A stretch of 63,434 bases of DNA, counting the filler, from Choristocarpus tenellus KU-1152 (Eukaryota; Protista; Phaeophyceae), in assembly GCA_964200185.2 (NCBI GenBank). It is 9 parts of 9 records of this genome, joined end to end, with 100 filler letters (N's around TTAATTAATTAA, not from the genome) between each part and the next. Parts side by side here need not be neighbours in the genome. Positions count along the whole stretch, not along the records: positions 11,314 to 19,068 come from CAXNAD020005637.1; 8 more parts are not named here. One strand, given 5' to 3'. Position numbers and translations under genes: made by a program. Under the pieces are notes generated by a model. That model saw only the letters and a program-made list of their open reading frames with translations, made no database searches and was not told the origin of the DNA. This document shows, one piece after another, positions 11,314 to 19,068 of the stretch. Within the stretch, counting starts at the first letter, position 1, and every line of letters begins with the position of its first letter.

Positions 11314-11385
11314 CACTTTTCCTGGTTTTTGTCCAAATGGACGCCCTGGTGTAGACCCCCTCCCCCCCCCCAGATACTTTGGGTC
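11314..11385 (-). mobile_element. MITE family B partial copy
   Basis: ccaaatggacgccctggtgtagacccc...cagatactttggg is one end of family B, cut by the contig edge. Confidence 0.8.
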
Positions 11386-11528
11386 TGCTGTTAGTGGATA
11401 GGTACGCCAATACACAGCATACACGGCTTGTGTTCTCTAATTATGATGTTTCGAATCCGACACCCTAGTGTACACCCTTGAAATCCACACAGTTGACGTT
11501 TTATGAATTAAAGAGGAATTGAACTCAC

Positions 11529-13965
11529 GTGTTCCCGAGCTTGCCAAATTGCAGATTCTTCATGGGCCTTCTTGAGTTCTTGCATTGCCTTATCGAGGTC
11601 AGAGTTCATTTTTTTCTTCTTTGCTTCCCCTCCCTCCATCTGTCTCTTGAGATACTGAACCTGCTTCTCTAGCTCTGCAATCCTGGTGCAGGATTGTTGA
11701 AGGGATGCCACATTCACCTTACTGTCAGTCTCCATGATTAGAATCCTATCTTCTTTTTCCTGGAGAGGGAGGAGTGAGATGTGGTGGTACCTGTGTGTGT
11801 TGTTTGGTTGACAGCCACATGCAAGAAGCACGTGTGGTGTGACAAAGAGAGAAGGATCACTTCTTATCCACACTGGTGGAGTGTCCATGTTTCATTTGCT
11901 TGGAGTTTCACACGAACACAGTAGTATTATTGTGGGTTGGTTGCAGAGAAAGGAATATTTACTGCCATACAGCCACATGTAAGAAGCATGTGTAGTGTGA
12001 CAAAGAGAGACAAGGATCACTTCTTATCCACACTGGTGGAGTGTCCACGTTTCATGTGCTTAGAGTGTCACACGAATGCACTCGTATTATTGTGGGTAGG
12101 TCGCAGAGAAGGGAATGTTTACTGTGATAGGTAGGAACAATGATCTGATTTGAGCATTAAAAACACTGAGGCATTGGGGATGCAAAAAAAAGCAAGTTAT
12201 CTGTGGAGTATGCATGTGGAGCAAGGGGATTGCAAGGAATAAATAGAGATTGCAATCAGCTCGAGAGACAAAGTTGCAACAACAACAAAACCTTAGATCT
12301 GATATATTATCATCTAAGAACCATATACAAAGTTTGAAGGAGAGAGGAAAGAAGTGGCTCATGGCAGCTGTGTTTCTTTATGTTTCAGTCTCCTGAATGC
12401 AGTGTATGCAAGAACAATGTGAGACCCATGGCGAGATGAAAGTGAAAAAACGTAGGTAACGCGCTCTCCATAGCCTACTTTCACAAAACTCCCCCGGATG
12501 AACTGTGTAGAAAACATACTCCTTAAATAGAATCGACTTCCACAGTTAGAACAGCCTCGCCTTGAGGTTCAGTAGGAGATGTTTTGTATTTGCCTCCTGA
12601 CCCCGAATCTGTTCCACAAGGTTATCCACTCGTTCTGCTTCTGCAGTTAGTGATGATGTCAGCTCGTGGAGTTGATACTTGAGACTTTCTTGCCCTAAAC
12701 TGTTCGTGTGTCTGCGCCTGACCTCCGCCTCAAGGTCAGAGCACCTTGCCTCCAGCTGTTCACAGTTGTCAGGAAGAGATGGGGGGGAGAACGAGAAAAC
12801 TGATGAAACACTGGAGGAAAAGGCTCAAGGGGAACAACTCTCAAAAGAGCAGGGTGGGTAAGATGTTTGTCAATGTCTATGGTTTATAACGCAATTGCAG
12901 CAATCTTACCAAGTTATTCTTGTGTTTCTACATCAAAATGCTCGAAATATTTGAGCAAGCTATCATTACTCTTTGGGCTTACTCATCAATCAGGCCAAGT
13001 GTTCACATCAAATAGGATCCTGGCACTTACAACCACAGTCACTGGGACCATTTGCTTTGCATCAGTGATGAGCTGCTGCCAATACCCATCGTAGGAGACT
13101 AATGCTTGCCTGGTTCTTCTCTTGGCGAAGGCCCTCCCTCTGTTGGTTTGCATCCTCCAGAATCCTGGAAGATGCTTCCTTGACCGAAGAAACCTCAGCT
13201 TGAAGGTCACTAGCTCGTTTCTGGAGCCGCTGGACATGATCGTGGAGCTTGAAGCATTTACCATATCGTTCGGCAAGGGGACAAATGCCACTGTTTAAGG
13301 TATCGAGAAGGAAATCTTGTCTGGTGAAGAATCGATTAATTCGAATTATACGCGACAATTTTACTGATAATATGTATGAATTTCTTGTTGTGTAATCGAA
13401 AACATCTCCTCTAATCCAATTTGATTGCTCACCTCCTCTGCTAGATCGTTGGGACCTGCGACTGCAACTGCGATAGCTTCGGCTATCCTGGTCTCGATGC
13501 TTTCTTCGTTGGGGACATCCTACCAGAAGGACAAATGGCAGGGACGAAATGATAAGAGGCCAGAAACGATGCCTCCAAAATATCTGCGTCTCCTTCTCCA
13601 CGTTTCTTAAGCGACATGTTCGAATACGTATCGTGGAGTCCCACGTACTTCAATCACTATTATTTATCGGTACAAAAATCAGGAGTCATGAATCACCTCC
13701 AGATTTTTCCTAAGTCTGGCATTTTCCTTTTGCAATGAATGCAGCACCTCAAGGGTCCGGATGTGCTTTCCTAAGAGCAAAGAGGCAGTCCTGCCAGTAT
13801 CGGCAACCATCCCTGATGTAGAGGCCATCATTCCTGCATCGCTGTGTCGGAGCGTGTTCACTTGTGTGTGTGGAGGTTATAAATTTGCCGATCCTAATAC
13901 TACAGTTTTGCCGTTACAAAGCACAACAGAACGTTGTGTTGTCGTGTTTCTTCACCAGAAATCAT
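11529..13965 (-). CDS. Multi-exon coiled-coil protein, 3' end missing
   Basis: Phase-compatible exons 13965-13956, 13860-13697, 13519-13433, 13247-13110, 12755-12561 and 11759-11529 give heptad-rich peptide (LHSLQKENARLRKNLE...RIAELEKQVQYLKRQME); two introns need GC donors. Confidence 0.7.
11811..12124. repeat. Intronic tandem duplication, two units of about 158 bp
   Basis: acagccacatg...gacaaagaga..aaggatcacttcttatccacactggtggagtgtcca...gaat.tttactg occurs at 11811 and 11969. Confidence 0.9.
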
Positions 13966-14017
13966 TTTGGATTCTGACGGATGTAACTGTCGTTGTTGAC
14001 TCAATGTAGTGGTCAAA

Positions 14018-14610
14018 ATGTATAAATTGTTCAGCGGAGGTAGCAAAGGCGGCAAAGGAGATAGAGACATGGAATCGATTGATAATGAAACCACAACAGA
14101 TGTGGCGGGTGGCATCCAAATCTTCGTGTCAACCCTACATGGACAGGTTTGTGTACAACTCAGCGTTTTCGAACATCCATATTAAGGCCAAGAATATGTA
14201 TCTTTCTCACAACTAACCCTCCAACCGACCTCACTCCCGAATCCTGTCAAATTTTTCTCACACAGGTAGTTACTTTGAGAGATGTATGTCTCACGGGGGA
14301 TGTGTCTCAGTTACGTCAAAAGGTGGTCAACCGTGTGGGAATTACACTAATCGATCGTTCAAACAACAACGCTCTGGGAAAATACGATTTTACTGGTGAA
14401 TGTTTAGCAAGCAATGGGGCTGTTTTGGAGGGGATTGATTGTAACGGGGGGGTTAGTGATCACTGTGAACGTCTTCTCTACGCTGGAAAGGAACTGGTGG
14501 AAGGAAGGCCTTTGCAGGAGTATGGACTTGGGGAAGGGAGCACGATCCATTCACTAGGGAGGTTGAGGGGGGGTGCACAGCTTGGGAAAGTGGTCAAAGG
14601 AAGAAGTCAG
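14018..14610 (+). CDS. Ubiquitin-like domain exons (14018-14146, 14266-14610), probably the 5' exons of the DRC2 gene
   Basis: IQIFVSTLHGQVVTL...LRQKVVNRVGI...ERLLYAGKELVEGRPLQEYGLGEGSTIHSLGRLRGG aligns with ubiquitin (MQIFVKTLTGK...[34 protein letters not shown]); GT-AG phase-0 intron. Confidence 0.85.
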
Positions 14611-14972
14611 GTGCGTTTCTCAGGATCTTAATCACGAGTTGATGAGAAGGTGGGATTATATAGATGGGATATCCTACGGTTCTGCTTCATCATACGTTTC
14701 GATGTCTTGGGGAAGGTTTCAAGGGCAGCCAATGTGACTAGGGTGATCGACACGACAGATCATGACATAACCCTTAAGTCGAGGGTACTTTTCTGATCAT
14801 GAAGCAGAAGTATCTCAGTAAGAGGGAGAGAGAGAGCGGGTGAAGGAAGAGGGAGAGGGAGGGAGAGGAGGGAGAAACAAAGCAAGCAATAGCCCTTAAA
14901 CATTCAGGGAAGCGAAGCAAAAAAAAGGTCGAATCCTTGAGCACTTTTCGACCCATCTGTTCCTTTAAAAAG

Positions 14973-17900
14973 GTGAAAAAGAAAGCACCAGACAAACCCA
15001 AGGAGTATGCTGAGATGCAGGCCAAGTACGCCAAGATGCAAGAGATGGACGTGGCTCGCCAGCAGGCTACTGCTGCCAAGGCAGACCTCCGACGAAGGAT
15101 GGAACAGGAGGAAAAGAACAGTAGAACAAACCGCCTCAAGATACAAAACCAGTGGCGAAAGATCATGCGCTTGTCCAAGGTGAGATCTGGCATTCTGTTT
15201 TCTGTTTGTATTCCATTAATGTGGAAGGGGGGTTCAGGAAGTTGCAAGAACACGTTTGTATGCTTGCCTTGTGATGTTTTGATTGTTGAATCTCAACGAG
15301 CCAAAACATTTTATACTGATCAGAGTGGAGGGCAAAATTCTGCCACAAATTCCTCTCTCTTTCAGGATTATGTCCTTACATCATAACTGTGTACTCTAAT
15401 TCCGTTGGACTACTAACACTAGAGAAGGAAAATCCTAATAATCTTTTATGTACAGAGAATGAGATTTCTATCATGTGTATCCTTCAGGGGTAGGGCATGC
15501 GACCCCCTTTCTGCATTTCCTATTCAGGTCCTGGTCTATCCACTTTGTCATCGCTCCAGTCAGCAATGAGACGTTCTCCACAAAGAAAGCTTGCCCATTC
15601 CTGATTTCCTTGACTTCCTGATTCCTCTGGACTCCTTGATTGTACTTCACAACAGCAAAGATTAAGCCAAAGAAAGGCACATAGACTCAGCTACAGATAC
15701 AGACAAAGATAGAGACAAAGATACAGATGAACACAAACACAGATCCTGCAAAGAGCAATCTGTATATGCATCTCTACCTATTACCCCAGAGTACATAGTA
15801 TTACTGTTGCTCACCTCTTCTTTCTCATCTTTCTTTTCCTTTGTGAGCAACACCTCTCGTGCATCCTCTCCAAACCTATGTTTTAGGTAGCAAGCCTGAG
15901 GAAGGATATTGAAATCTTGTCTCAGAACCATGAGCGAGATGTGGATCGCAAGGATGCTATTGTCCAGATGCTTGACAGGGACCTTGAGGAGGTGTGCATG
16001 TGTGGGGTTTGGGGGGCACGCAGAGGGGAAACACATTTATGGGGGATTTAAAGCATTATGTACTCTAATGTGTTGGGAGAAGTCATCCATAAATTTGTGC
16101 GTGTGTGTATGTGTGTGTGTTAGATGTCAGTTCGTATTTCGATTTCAAAGCCATATTGGTGCCACTTGGCCAAGGAAAGGGTGGATTGATTATAAAGCAG
16201 GGGAAGGAATGACAAAGTTGGCCTTCTTAGGGTCTAGTGGAGCAGTGAATAGGCCGATATGAAGGTGAGAAACAGGACTCTGTTCTTGTTCAACGAGAAG
16301 TATCATTGCAAGAATACTGTTCACTTGGAGTTGGTCTTTCCATGGTGTAAAATGTTCGAAGGGGGAGAAAAAACTTCTTATTTTGTCACTGCAAGGAATG
16401 CCATGCCCTCCTCCATCTTATAGTGCTCACCCACTCTTCAGATGGGGATTTTTCCTCATTGGGCGTCCCAAAAGCATCGTCCTTAAGAGCACAGTTCACC
16501 CTCCCGTTCCCCTGAACACAATGGAAGGCAGAGGACCAGTTTCAGATGGCGCTGCGAGCACACCTGCAGAACATGGACCGCCTCATCGACCTACAGGACT
16601 CCAGGCTGTTAGCTCTTGAGCAGGAATTTGAGGTGGAACTGAAGACTCTGGAGCAGGTCTGCAGTGAAGGGCGATGGTATGATATGTACTCCAACAAGAC
16701 GGTTGTGTGTAAGATATGAAAGAAGACATATTTGTTTGATACCTCTCTCTCACTTTGGATCCATAACGTATATTGATTATTTTGCTCCCCCCCCTCCCAG
16801 TTGCTTGGGACAATTGAGAGTACTGCACTTCTTTGTGTGGGCAGCGTAGTGAAACTCCTGGCTATCTTCCTGCAAATTTTGATGACACGATCATACCTTT
16901 GTGGTTTTGGAATATCCACGACCTCTGTGTGTAGGACCAGGAGACTTTAACCCATCCGTATGATGCTTTCTGGAATATTCTTCCTGGCTCTGATTTCCCT
17001 TTCAAGTCTGTTTTGTGTGTTGCCCCCCAAAATCGACTCCGTGCGCACGGCATACACTACTGTGGACAGTTGCAAATCATACCTTCAAATATAACCTCCC
17101 CAATGCACTGCATTAGCATTGCAACCTGTATACATCCAACATGTGTATTGATTGAGGGCAGTATGCATTCGCACTTCGAAACACTTCTGAATACTTCTTA
17201 GTAAATGCTTACTCCTCAACTACAGCATAAGCTCGTGAGATATTGTGTGCTCAAGACCAACCATTGTACACTTGACTCTTGTTTCAGGCTGTTGAGTGCT
17301 CACAAGTAGTCTGTACAAGTGTGCAAGTGCACACCCATCTCCTGAGCGTTGTGCACTACATCTGTACCCACACAGATTGCAGTGTAGTAGTTGAAGATAC
17401 TGGTTACCTTTGGGCGCTTCCCACATACTCTGGAACATCTTTCATCGGGGTGGCAGGTAGTATTGCTTGCTCCTTTTCCCTTCTCTCTCGCATATTTGAA
17501 TGGGGTAGATGAATGCCTTCTTCTCTTCTTCAGGAAATTGAAGTTGAACGCGAGCTTATTGTGAAGCACCACGCCACCGAGACCCAAGAACTCAACGACA
17601 TCATCTCTGCAGTAGAGGTGGGCGGTAGCACTGGTTGAATGATCAATCACCCCCACCTTGTCTGTACATCAGTCACTACCTTAGTGCTTGCTTGTACTGT
17701 GCTAACCACTTGCGACATGGTGGATCCTGTGCTTGTTTCAATAGGGTTGGTTGCATCAGGAATGCTATTGTGCTCTTATTGGGACAAAATATCGATAAGA
17801 GGTGGTGTTTATTCGGCCCCCTCCCAACCTTTGATGCCAATGAGTTGATTTCCAGTTACAGCAAACCAATACTCCTGCCTCTGAATCCCCACCGGTGAGC

Positions 17901-18852
17901 TTTGAAGTATTTCATGGACATGAGGTCTTCTCTGAGTAACACAAGGGGCTTATTATCCTTCCCTCTCTTGCTTCGTTTGGTCCTCCTCTATCTTTTTCTG
18001 TGCTCTACTTTTGGATTATGGCAATGTCGCAGGTTCAGGAGGAGGAGAGGGAGGCAGAGGCGCGCCAGGAGCATGAACAGCTTAGGGAGGAGATTCGTAA
18101 CAAGGTACGAAACCTTACACAAATATGTAGACATAAGACTGATGGAATAGGATCTGAACATGAAGAAATATAGATTGTGCAATGTGAGAAGTGGCTGATA
18201 TTCTTCTGAGTTGATCTCCCTGACCATTTGTAGCTTATACAAGAGCAGCTGGCAAGGACCAGAACGCACTGGGATGGTGAGCTCCAGAGGGAGGAGCCTT
18301 CTTAGAGGCTAGGTTTGTTGTTATTGTCTTGTTTACTGCGGTAGGTGAGCAGCGGGAAGAAGCCTCCTTTGTAGGTGTTAGTTCCTATTGGAGAGGAATT
18401 ATTGAATTACGATAGGGTGAGTAGCAGGACGAACAAGCCTGACCTAACAAGTATAGATCAAGGAGGCGCTTTGATTTTCAGGAGAGGCGAAATACATAAA
18501 GGCAATAACTCACATTAGGTGATGGTAGGGAGCCTGAGGGTGAGATTGAATGCAACAAAGACCAAAACTTAATAGGCGAAGATACGAATGTGTCAGATTG
18601 TTGCACCAATGTTCCCACAATACAGCAGTTGGCCACTGAGCAACCTTGAACATGAGCCCCAGTAACTGCACTTCCGAGATGACCCAACTCCGAGATCCTC
18701 TGGTTCTCAGCTCTCAGTTGTTCTGTCTCTCTACCCCCTGAACATATGCAATGCAGAATCTGGAGGAGATCAATGTCCTCCGTATCACCCTGGACACACA
18801 AATTGAGGACCTTGAGCAGCACTTTGAGACGGCCCACATCAACTACCTTCAG
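14973..18852 (+). CDS. CCDC65: Dynein regulatory complex subunit 2 (CCDC65), 3' part cut by contig end
   Basis: Exons 14973-15179, 15887-15991, 16528-16656, 17534-17617, 18033-18104 and 18757-18852 (all phase 0) give [72 protein letters not shown]...[13 protein letters not shown], hallmark DRC2 sequence. Confidence 0.93.
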
Positions 18853-19012
18853 GTATCGATACTAGTCTCTTTGATCGCTCTTTTCCCCACAGATTGTCTC
18901 GTCCCTGGTCGTGACATGTTGCTTTTCAATCTTTTAATTGAAATCAAGATCCCAAATCAAATCCCTCATACTGCGCTGCCCCTCCTGAATGTCCTTTAGC
19001 CACCTCCATCCT

Positions 19013-19068
<56 letters not shown>

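Follow-up and report, generated by a model that had tools for sequence, protein, structure and literature searches.

Is the ubiquitin-like domain (UBL) encoded immediately upstream of the flagellar DRC2 (CCDC65) exons in the brown alga Choristocarpus tenellus KU-1152 a protein of its own, or is it the N-terminal part of DRC2 itself? The window analyzed here is a stretch of 63,434 nucleotides (filler included) that joins nine parts of nine records of the assembly GCA_964200185.2, and the locus lies in one of these parts (positions 11314–19068, from CAXNAD020005637.1), which consists of intron-rich eukaryotic DNA with 46% G+C. The first-pass annotation had placed at this locus a UBL exon ending in RLRGG plus a linker at a phase-0 donor (14610/14611) and, behind a phase-0 acceptor (14972/14973), a DRC2 exon without an in-frame ATG at its 5′ edge, and had proposed a UBL fusion as the form in which DRC2 is made. 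Both features are present at these positions, and the proposal receives strong support from comparison with relatives, in the form of an invariant linker, phase-0 splice sites, fused gene models, and transcripts. From 14018 to the edge of the piece, the comparison points with high confidence to a single gene, in which the UBL would be joined to DRC2 by the 14610–14973 splice.

All introns of the UBL-DRC2 gene are of the GT-AG type and in phase 0. UBL exon 2 (14266–14610, plus strand) opens with VVTLRDV, completes the beta-grasp, which carries a lineage-specific insert, and closes with ...ERLLYAGKELVEGRPLQEYGLGEGSTIHSLGRLRGG-AQLGKVVKGRSQ at the donor CAG/GTGCGT, the protein end being ...GRLRGGAQLGKVVKGRSQ. 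RLRGG is encoded at 14560–14574, with the di-Gly codons at 14569–14574, and is followed by the linker AQLGKVVKGRSQ (12 residues, 14575–14610); unspliced read-through of the exon adds VRFSGS before a stop at 14629–14631. The fusion intron (14611–14972, plus strand, 362 bp) ends at the acceptor tttaaaaag/G, in phase 0 at both ends, where the sequence reads ...ttcctttaaaaag/GTG and the letters before the next exon are ...ccatctgttcctttaaaaag. DRC2 exon 1 (14973–15179, plus strand) matches the NYD-SP28 domain and is 79% identical to residues 144–216 of Ectocarpus fasciculatus DRC2. Upstream of 14973 the frame stays open over 43 codons with no ATG, and within the exon the first ATG (15007) is out of frame, the first in-frame one being at 15015. 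The region 13900–15300 is reproduced without any difference by two DNA runs. A purine-rich GA/GGGAGA tract lies at about 14815–14880 inside the fusion intron.

A search with UBL exon 2 identified 28 relatives, mostly open reading frames (ORFs) called on brown-algal assemblies, and 29 sequences including the window were aligned. The UBL body is only 40–54% identical to that of the window, whereas R-L-R-G-G-A-Q-L-G-K-V-V-K-G-R-S-Q-V is invariant in 29/29 sequences, with RLRGGAQLGKVVKGRSQ-V as the fixed linker; past that V, at the donor GT, the read-through tails are conserved neither in sequence nor in length. The linker codons differ synonymously among five loci (gtggtcaaaggaagaagtcag, gtggtcaagggccgaagccag, and gttgtgaaaggaagaagccag, among others), indicating selection on the peptide. 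Four more brown-algal loci (L001 from Ectocarpus sp. 13, L003, L004, and L005) show the same succession of UBL exon, intron, and DRC2 exon VKKKGAEKPKEY, with fusion introns of 759, 613, 2225, and 663 bp, respectively, and the donor CAG/GTG and acceptor AG are in phase 0 in all of them as in the window. At L003 and L005 the acceptor AG belongs to an in-frame TAG, and the DRC2 exon there is therefore not readable from the upstream DNA. A partial NCBI model from Ectocarpus sp. 13 has ...VKGRSQ already joined to VKKKGAEKPKEYAELQAK. As a separate observation, the DRC2 exon at L005:5093 (a brown alga; Logan SRR23272292) opens with ATG (MKKKGSEKPREY) right after the in-frame TAG acceptor, the first codon in the other four loci being GTG or GTA (Val); this ATG may be a relic, or it may serve as an alternative start codon.

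When the 69-residue DRC2 exon was searched against 1.8 billion representatives, it aligned at residues 145–213, 91–157, 104–159, and 102–156 of proteins among the matches, not at the N-terminus, and the N-termini of the proteins found in this way are UBLs. Full-length fused models are available from E. fasciculatus (P0087, 671 amino acids), two further Ectocarpus species, Undaria pinnatifida, Chrysoparadoxa australica, Tribonema minus, Aureococcus anophagefferens, Pelagophyceae sp. CCMP2097, and Chrysophaeum taylorii. Uninterrupted frames are also found outside annotated genomes: the MMETSP transcript contigs L008 and L009 contain one UBL-DRC2 ORF of 592 amino acids, the transcript-sized Logan contig L007 (2109 nt) one of 628 amino acids, and the metagenomic contig L002 an intronless one of 596 amino acids; in all four contigs, stops in the same frame lie upstream of the UBL ATG. 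Conservation of the junction across many species makes the arrangement more than a chance juxtaposition.

For the assignment of the two halves to their families, the window exons were searched singly, and natural orthologues (P0087 and others) were used as proxies for the whole protein. UBL exon 2 scores 34.7 bits against the Pfam ubiquitin family PF00240, above the cut-off of 25.4, and its last 48 residues (60–107) match ubiquitin chains in the PDB. Against NYD-SP28 (PF14772; cut-off, 22.1), the exon at 15887–15991 scores 27.9 bits and that at 14973–15179 scores 22.0 bits, just below the cut-off; this domain, situated near the DRC2 N-terminus, is split by an intron in the window. P0087 aligns to the window in six colinear exons by tblastn (59–97% identity), and UniRef gives the relatives the name 'Dynein regulatory complex subunit 2', i.e., DRC2 and not DRC1. 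The orthologues also carry a C-terminal NYD-SP28_assoc domain, and the window piece ends (19068) before that region. An AlphaFold model was built for residues 1–175 of P0087, the E. fasciculatus protein and not the joined window exons, from an alignment of 22 fused N-termini. It shows a beta-grasp (strands 14–20, 26–33, 97–101, and 122–127, and helix 39–50; predicted local distance difference test score, ~90) with a disordered, brown-alga-specific insert of 45 residues (51–95), and ubiquitin is its top match in Foldseek (target TM-score, 0.83–0.86). Confidence is low across RLRGGAQLGKVVKGRSQVKKKGAEKPK, and the DRC2 helix begins at residue 154. The modeled UBL-DRC2 junction is probably flexible, and would thus be accessible to a protease. 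A search of the ESM Atlas for look-alikes with residues 1–260 of another fused protein (P0154) gave no usable match.

The junction was then compared across the DRC2 family, using 125 relatives of at least 450 residues sorted by what precedes the motif [A]-x-L-G-K-x-V-K-G-[RK]-[ST]. A UBL-sized extension is present in 52 of them, with GG before the junction in 43, GS in 6, and GA in 3, and Ala after it in 50. Another 38, mainly oomycetes, have a short leader of 9–53 residues (GG in 37, followed by Ala in all), 20 are unfused and start at the motif with Met before the junction, and in 15 the motif was not found. GG is thereby kept in 80 of the 90 extended sequences, and the N-terminal UBL with a conserved GG that was sought in stramenopile DRC2 relatives is indeed found there. 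The unfused proteins have Met and a small residue (A, V, T, or P) placed straight on the motif in 17/20 cases, the other three starting MRLGK (two from Triparma); examples are MAKLGKNVKGKSK (Bicosoecida), MALLGKDVKGKK (Mucochytrium), MAQLGKTVKGRTR, MAKLGKNVKG, MALLGKDVKG, and MAQLGKTVKG. Fused forms thus read GG/A-x-LGK at the junction, whereas unfused orthologues read M/A-x-LGK. Because unfused stramenopile DRC2 starts with M-A-x-LGK-x-VKG, UBL-GG stands residue for residue at the position of the initiator Met, and the linker is strongly conserved because it is the N-terminus of stramenopile DRC2. Methionine aminopeptidase excises Met before a small second residue, so that the Met of these 17 unfused proteins would be removed.

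The UBL body, in contrast to this fixed junction, is only 28–41% identical across classes. We also considered a link between the linker and the start of ribosomal protein eS30 (GSLARAGKVRGQTPKV), and discarded it: Pfam scans of junction pieces with E-values up to 10 gave no Ribosomal_S30, and the motif is the ordinary stramenopile DRC2 N-terminus. In two metagenomic proteins, P0138 and P0200, nearly identical DRC2 cores follow different N-termini: one protein has a UBL very similar to ubiquitin that ends LRLMGG/AQLGKTVKGRTR, the other starts MAQLGKTVKGRTR. Alternative forms, sister species, or an exon missed by the ORF call could account for the difference.

The short leaders of oomycetes (Phytophthora, Pythium, Lagenidium, Saprolegnia, Achlya, and Aphanomyces) typically read MPRRKSLRNNPRREHELPALFHVSLKLRGG directly before AQLGKAVKGRSK, and resemble the last strand and the tail of ubiquitin only. 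At the DRC2 gene of Phytophthora infestans (L006:3001–4686; DS028137.1), the 1.3 kb upstream showed no UBL exon. In a tree of 72 rows and 200 columns of the DRC2 core (with SH-aLRT support only), which is coarse and includes many metagenomic ORFs, some of its unfused rows perhaps just missing an upstream exon, fused forms occur on all major branches, and P0150, the nearest non-oomycete relative and one with a full UBL, is sister to the oomycete stumps. By sequence comparison, the UBL-DRC2 fusion is ancient and occurs widely among stramenopiles, extending from brown algae to pelagophytes and, as a stump, to oomycetes, and the tree fits an early fusion with later decay and loss. Within this distribution, the UBL-DRC2 gene of Aureococcus anophagefferens (P0107 and P0108) is apparently intact; Aureococcus is known as a non-motile coccoid alga.

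Ubiquitin fusions with the ribosomal proteins eL40 and eS31 (S27a) are cut by deubiquitinases after LRGG. By analogy with ubiquitin-eL40, ubiquitin-eS31, and FUBI-eS30, the UBL of DRC2 would be a removable N-terminal pro-domain: a deubiquitinase would cut after RLRGG and free a basic DRC2 starting with Ala (AQLGKVVKGRSQVKKK...), whose N-terminus would be the same Ala end that unfused relatives would obtain by Met excision. The register of UBL-GG with the initiator Met is, among the sequence comparisons, the strongest new argument for such processing. The UBL body evolves fast, has variable inserts, and is lost in oomycetes, only the tail and the next residue being fixed, a pattern more in keeping with a disposable pro-domain like FUBI than with a modifier with many partners; the released UBL would most likely be a disposable helper of folding or dosage. 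As to the site affected, the DRC2 N-terminus in Chlamydomonas sits on the linker side in the nexin-dynein regulatory complex, or N-DRC (PMC4294676), and in Tetrahymena it lies in the positively charged top of the N-DRC linker, touching DRC8, with loops facing the adjacent doublet (PMC10504270). A UBL left on the DRC2 tip would occupy this inter-doublet contact. Cleavage of the UBL from DRC2 after GG appears, by this reasoning, somewhat better than an even prospect, and we hold the explanation as a whole, a UBL-DRC2 gene with a cleaved pro-domain, to be moderately likely.

Several observations weigh against this explanation, and they bear on the three alternatives to different degrees. In this species, the UBL and DRC2 might be two genes, with the UBL protein ending at 14629–14631 and DRC2 having its own promoter and a start Met at 15015 or in a small unseen exon. 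The stop only 18 nt beyond the donor and the in-frame ATGs at 15015 and further on would suit such an arrangement, and the sequencing runs listed for this organism are two, both DNA-like and neither RNA, with no splice joints in them. The fusion intron also offers two weak phase-0 ATG...GT mini-exons (14642–14695 and 14664–14678); they are unconserved, and as candidates for a hidden DRC2 start exon they were rejected because relatives lend them no support. The read-through tails, however, are conserved neither in length nor in sequence, the out-of-frame ATG at 15007 precedes that at 15015, the conserved VKKK...KPKEY would stay untranslated, and transcripts and annotated models of relatives show the fused frame, all of which leaves two separate genes very improbable. 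More weight attaches to a protein that is fused and stays uncut, its UBL adding to the tip of the N-DRC linker a globular domain that could bind a partner or the adjacent doublet. Stable N-terminal UBL domains are common in proteins, and junctions without GG occur, one clade having RLLGS (P0154, P0159, P0162, P0170, P0177, and P0193) and another GA (P0131, P0132, and P0145). P0154 is a EukProt transcript labelled INCI, which may stand for Incisomonas. Such GS and GA junctions should be poor deubiquitinase substrates, and these lineages may have stopped cutting the UBL off, if it is normally removed.

The oomycetes raise a related difficulty for cleavage, since their leaders of 13–38 residues (..LFHVSLKLRGG; proteins P0144–P0198) stand straight before AQLGKAVKGRSK without a UBL body. 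A typical deubiquitinase should bind such a stump poorly, with no ubiquitin body to hold, and the conservation of LRGG-AQLGK in the absence of the body makes a role of the junction other than cleavage possible, for example as a structural motif in an uncut protein. The class of unfused proteins must be read with the caveat that many are ORF calls on metagenome contigs, from which an upstream exon may be missing. Nevertheless, stable UBL domains usually drop the di-Gly, which is retained here in the great majority of extended sequences; the body, which oomycetes do without, evolves very fast, in contrast to a fixed tail and next residue; and the junction falls exactly at the Met-Ala of unfused relatives. 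We thus regard an uncut fusion as the less probable outcome, though the foremost of the alternatives. That the UBL is cleaved and then conjugated through its di-Gly as an axoneme-linked modifier, as the first-pass annotation had ventured, is improbable. In its favor, the window and most relatives have an intact RLRGG, and a 'ubiquitin-like protein' was detected by tandem mass spectrometry in purified Chlamydomonas N-DRC (PMC4294676), which may be a coincidence. True modifiers of the ubiquitin, NEDD8, and SUMO type are highly conserved across species, whereas this UBL has the low identities given above both among brown-algal-type sequences and across classes, carries large variable inserts, has GS and GA clades, and in several lineages in which DRC2 persists has disappeared or shrunk to a stump. 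Because the body evolves so fast, a conserved conjugatable modifier is unlikely, and this part of the earlier proposal is not borne out.

The cleaved pro-domain would find its closest counterparts in Ub-eL40, Ub-eS31, and FUBI-eS30 (FAU), which likewise have an N-terminal domain with (L)RGG followed by a basic partner that lacks Met and is built into a large assembly, FUBI resembling the UBL of DRC2 also in its poorly conserved body. In contrast to these ribosomal fusions, the partner here is an axonemal coiled-coil scaffold, the brown-algal UBL has an insert of 40–60 residues, some lineages have GS, GA, or only a stump, and the processing is a prediction. Canonical DRC2/CCDC65 (Chlamydomonas FAP250, Tetrahymena, and human) shares with the window the NYD-SP28 coiled-coil scaffold and the extended Lys-rich N-terminus, and with stramenopile orthologues the C-terminal NYD-SP28_assoc; it starts with Met and a Lys-rich stretch, whereas stramenopile DRC2 has the A-x-LGK-x-VKG motif behind UBL-GG. 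Canonical DRC2 is not known to have a UBL. The non-ribosomal ubiquitin fusions of complex-plastid algae (Ubiq-NiSOD and others in Guillardia and Bigelowiella; PMC6332867) similarly place an N-terminal ubiquitin before an unrelated protein, but the domain of UBL-DRC2 is a divergent UBL and the fusion extends across most stramenopile lines. UBL-DRC2 may thus be seen, on the sequences compared, as a variant of natural ubiquitin-fusion precursors, unremarkable as a matter of gene models and of interest for the exact replacement of Met, the breadth across stramenopiles, and the decay series.

The claim that the fusion is undescribed held for the papers searched, and requires qualification for databases. 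Full-text searches combining DRC2, N-DRC, or CCDC65 with ubiquitin-like or fusion, and with stramenopile, found no paper on UBL-DRC2, subscription journals lying outside their coverage. The survey of algal ubiquitin fusions (PMC6332867) contains no mention of dynein, flagell-, coiled-coil, nexin, or NYD-SP28, and the brown-algal genome paper contains no mention of 'dynein regulatory' or DRC, its mentions of ubiquitin and gene fusion concerning other matters. The domain pair is nevertheless visible in automatic annotation, as 'Sperm tail/Ubiquitin family' and PF00240+PF14772. Two public DRC2 models, P0120 (Laminaria digitata, 495 amino acids) and P0133 (older Aureococcus, 475 amino acids), start at an internal Met and lack both the UBL and the basic N-terminus, which newer models of close relatives contain; they are likely annotation truncations. 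They fit the observation by Sibbald et al. (2019) that small ubiquitin exons are often overlooked by gene predictors (PMC6332867), and a lesson for annotation is that several public DRC2 models go without their UBL exons.

The remainder of the gene in the window is as follows, all on the plus strand. UBL exon 1 (14018–14146) begins with the ATG at 14018 and encodes a 32-residue leader and the ubiquitin strand beta1 (IQIFVSTLHGQ), its 3′ end reading ...GGIQIFVSTLHGQ at the phase-0 donor CAG/GTTTGT; by tblastn, an exon at the matching position of Ectocarpus loci ends in ...LFLASPQGQ. Intron 1 (14147–14265, 119 bp, GT-AG) interrupts the UBL. An unspliced version of the first UBL exon, suggested by a tblastn match in the intron frame ('...CQIFLTQ'), was rejected: it has neither an ATG nor the beta1-beta2 turn, and corresponds to the polypyrimidine tract of the acceptor. 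Downstream of DRC2 exon 1, tblastn delimits exons 2 (15887–15991, 35 residues, with its NYD-SP28 match), 3 (16528–16656, ending ...KTLEQ), 4 (17534–17617, 28 residues), 5 (18033–18104, 24 residues), and 6 (18757–18852, 32 residues). The gene runs past the piece edge at 19068, with ~300 C-terminal residues falling outside. A (TG)12 microsatellite lies in a DRC2 intron (16096–16120), and a run of 55 C at the edge (19014–19068) is possibly why the contig stops. On the minus strand, a coiled-coil gene (11508–13861) is arranged head to head with the UBL start, ~150 bp separating its ORF at 13861 from the ATG at 14018; a Pfam scan of this gene gave no family. Its region includes two tandem copies of a 160-bp unit with 89% identity (11811–12124). 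An unnamed gene is likewise present upstream on the minus strand in Ectocarpus sp. 13 (L001:500–3798).

Natural ubiquitin fusions are a textbook feature of two or three ribosomal proteins, in which ubiquitin aids production and is removed in a step of maturation. With a conserved fusion to a core N-DRC scaffold, this logic would reach cilia. Tentatively, and as a less likely elaboration of the cleaved pro-domain, the ubiquitin-fusion technique may have been applied to an axonemal protein since early stramenopiles: cleavage, and not co-translational Met excision and acetylation, would then make a free Ala on the basic N-DRC tip and could time the entry of DRC2, and the oomycete ..LKLRGG/AQLGK would be a minimal pro-peptide cut by a tail-recognizing protease. 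The graded decay, from the full domain through GS and GA variants and the oomycete stump to loss, is a natural experiment on the role of the UBL and of the junction. Flagellar assembly in oomycetes is also of practical interest, their zoospores being the infectious stage of major crop pathogens. Altogether, UBL-DRC2 offers a testable handle on how an axonemal subunit may be made, matured, or held back until needed.

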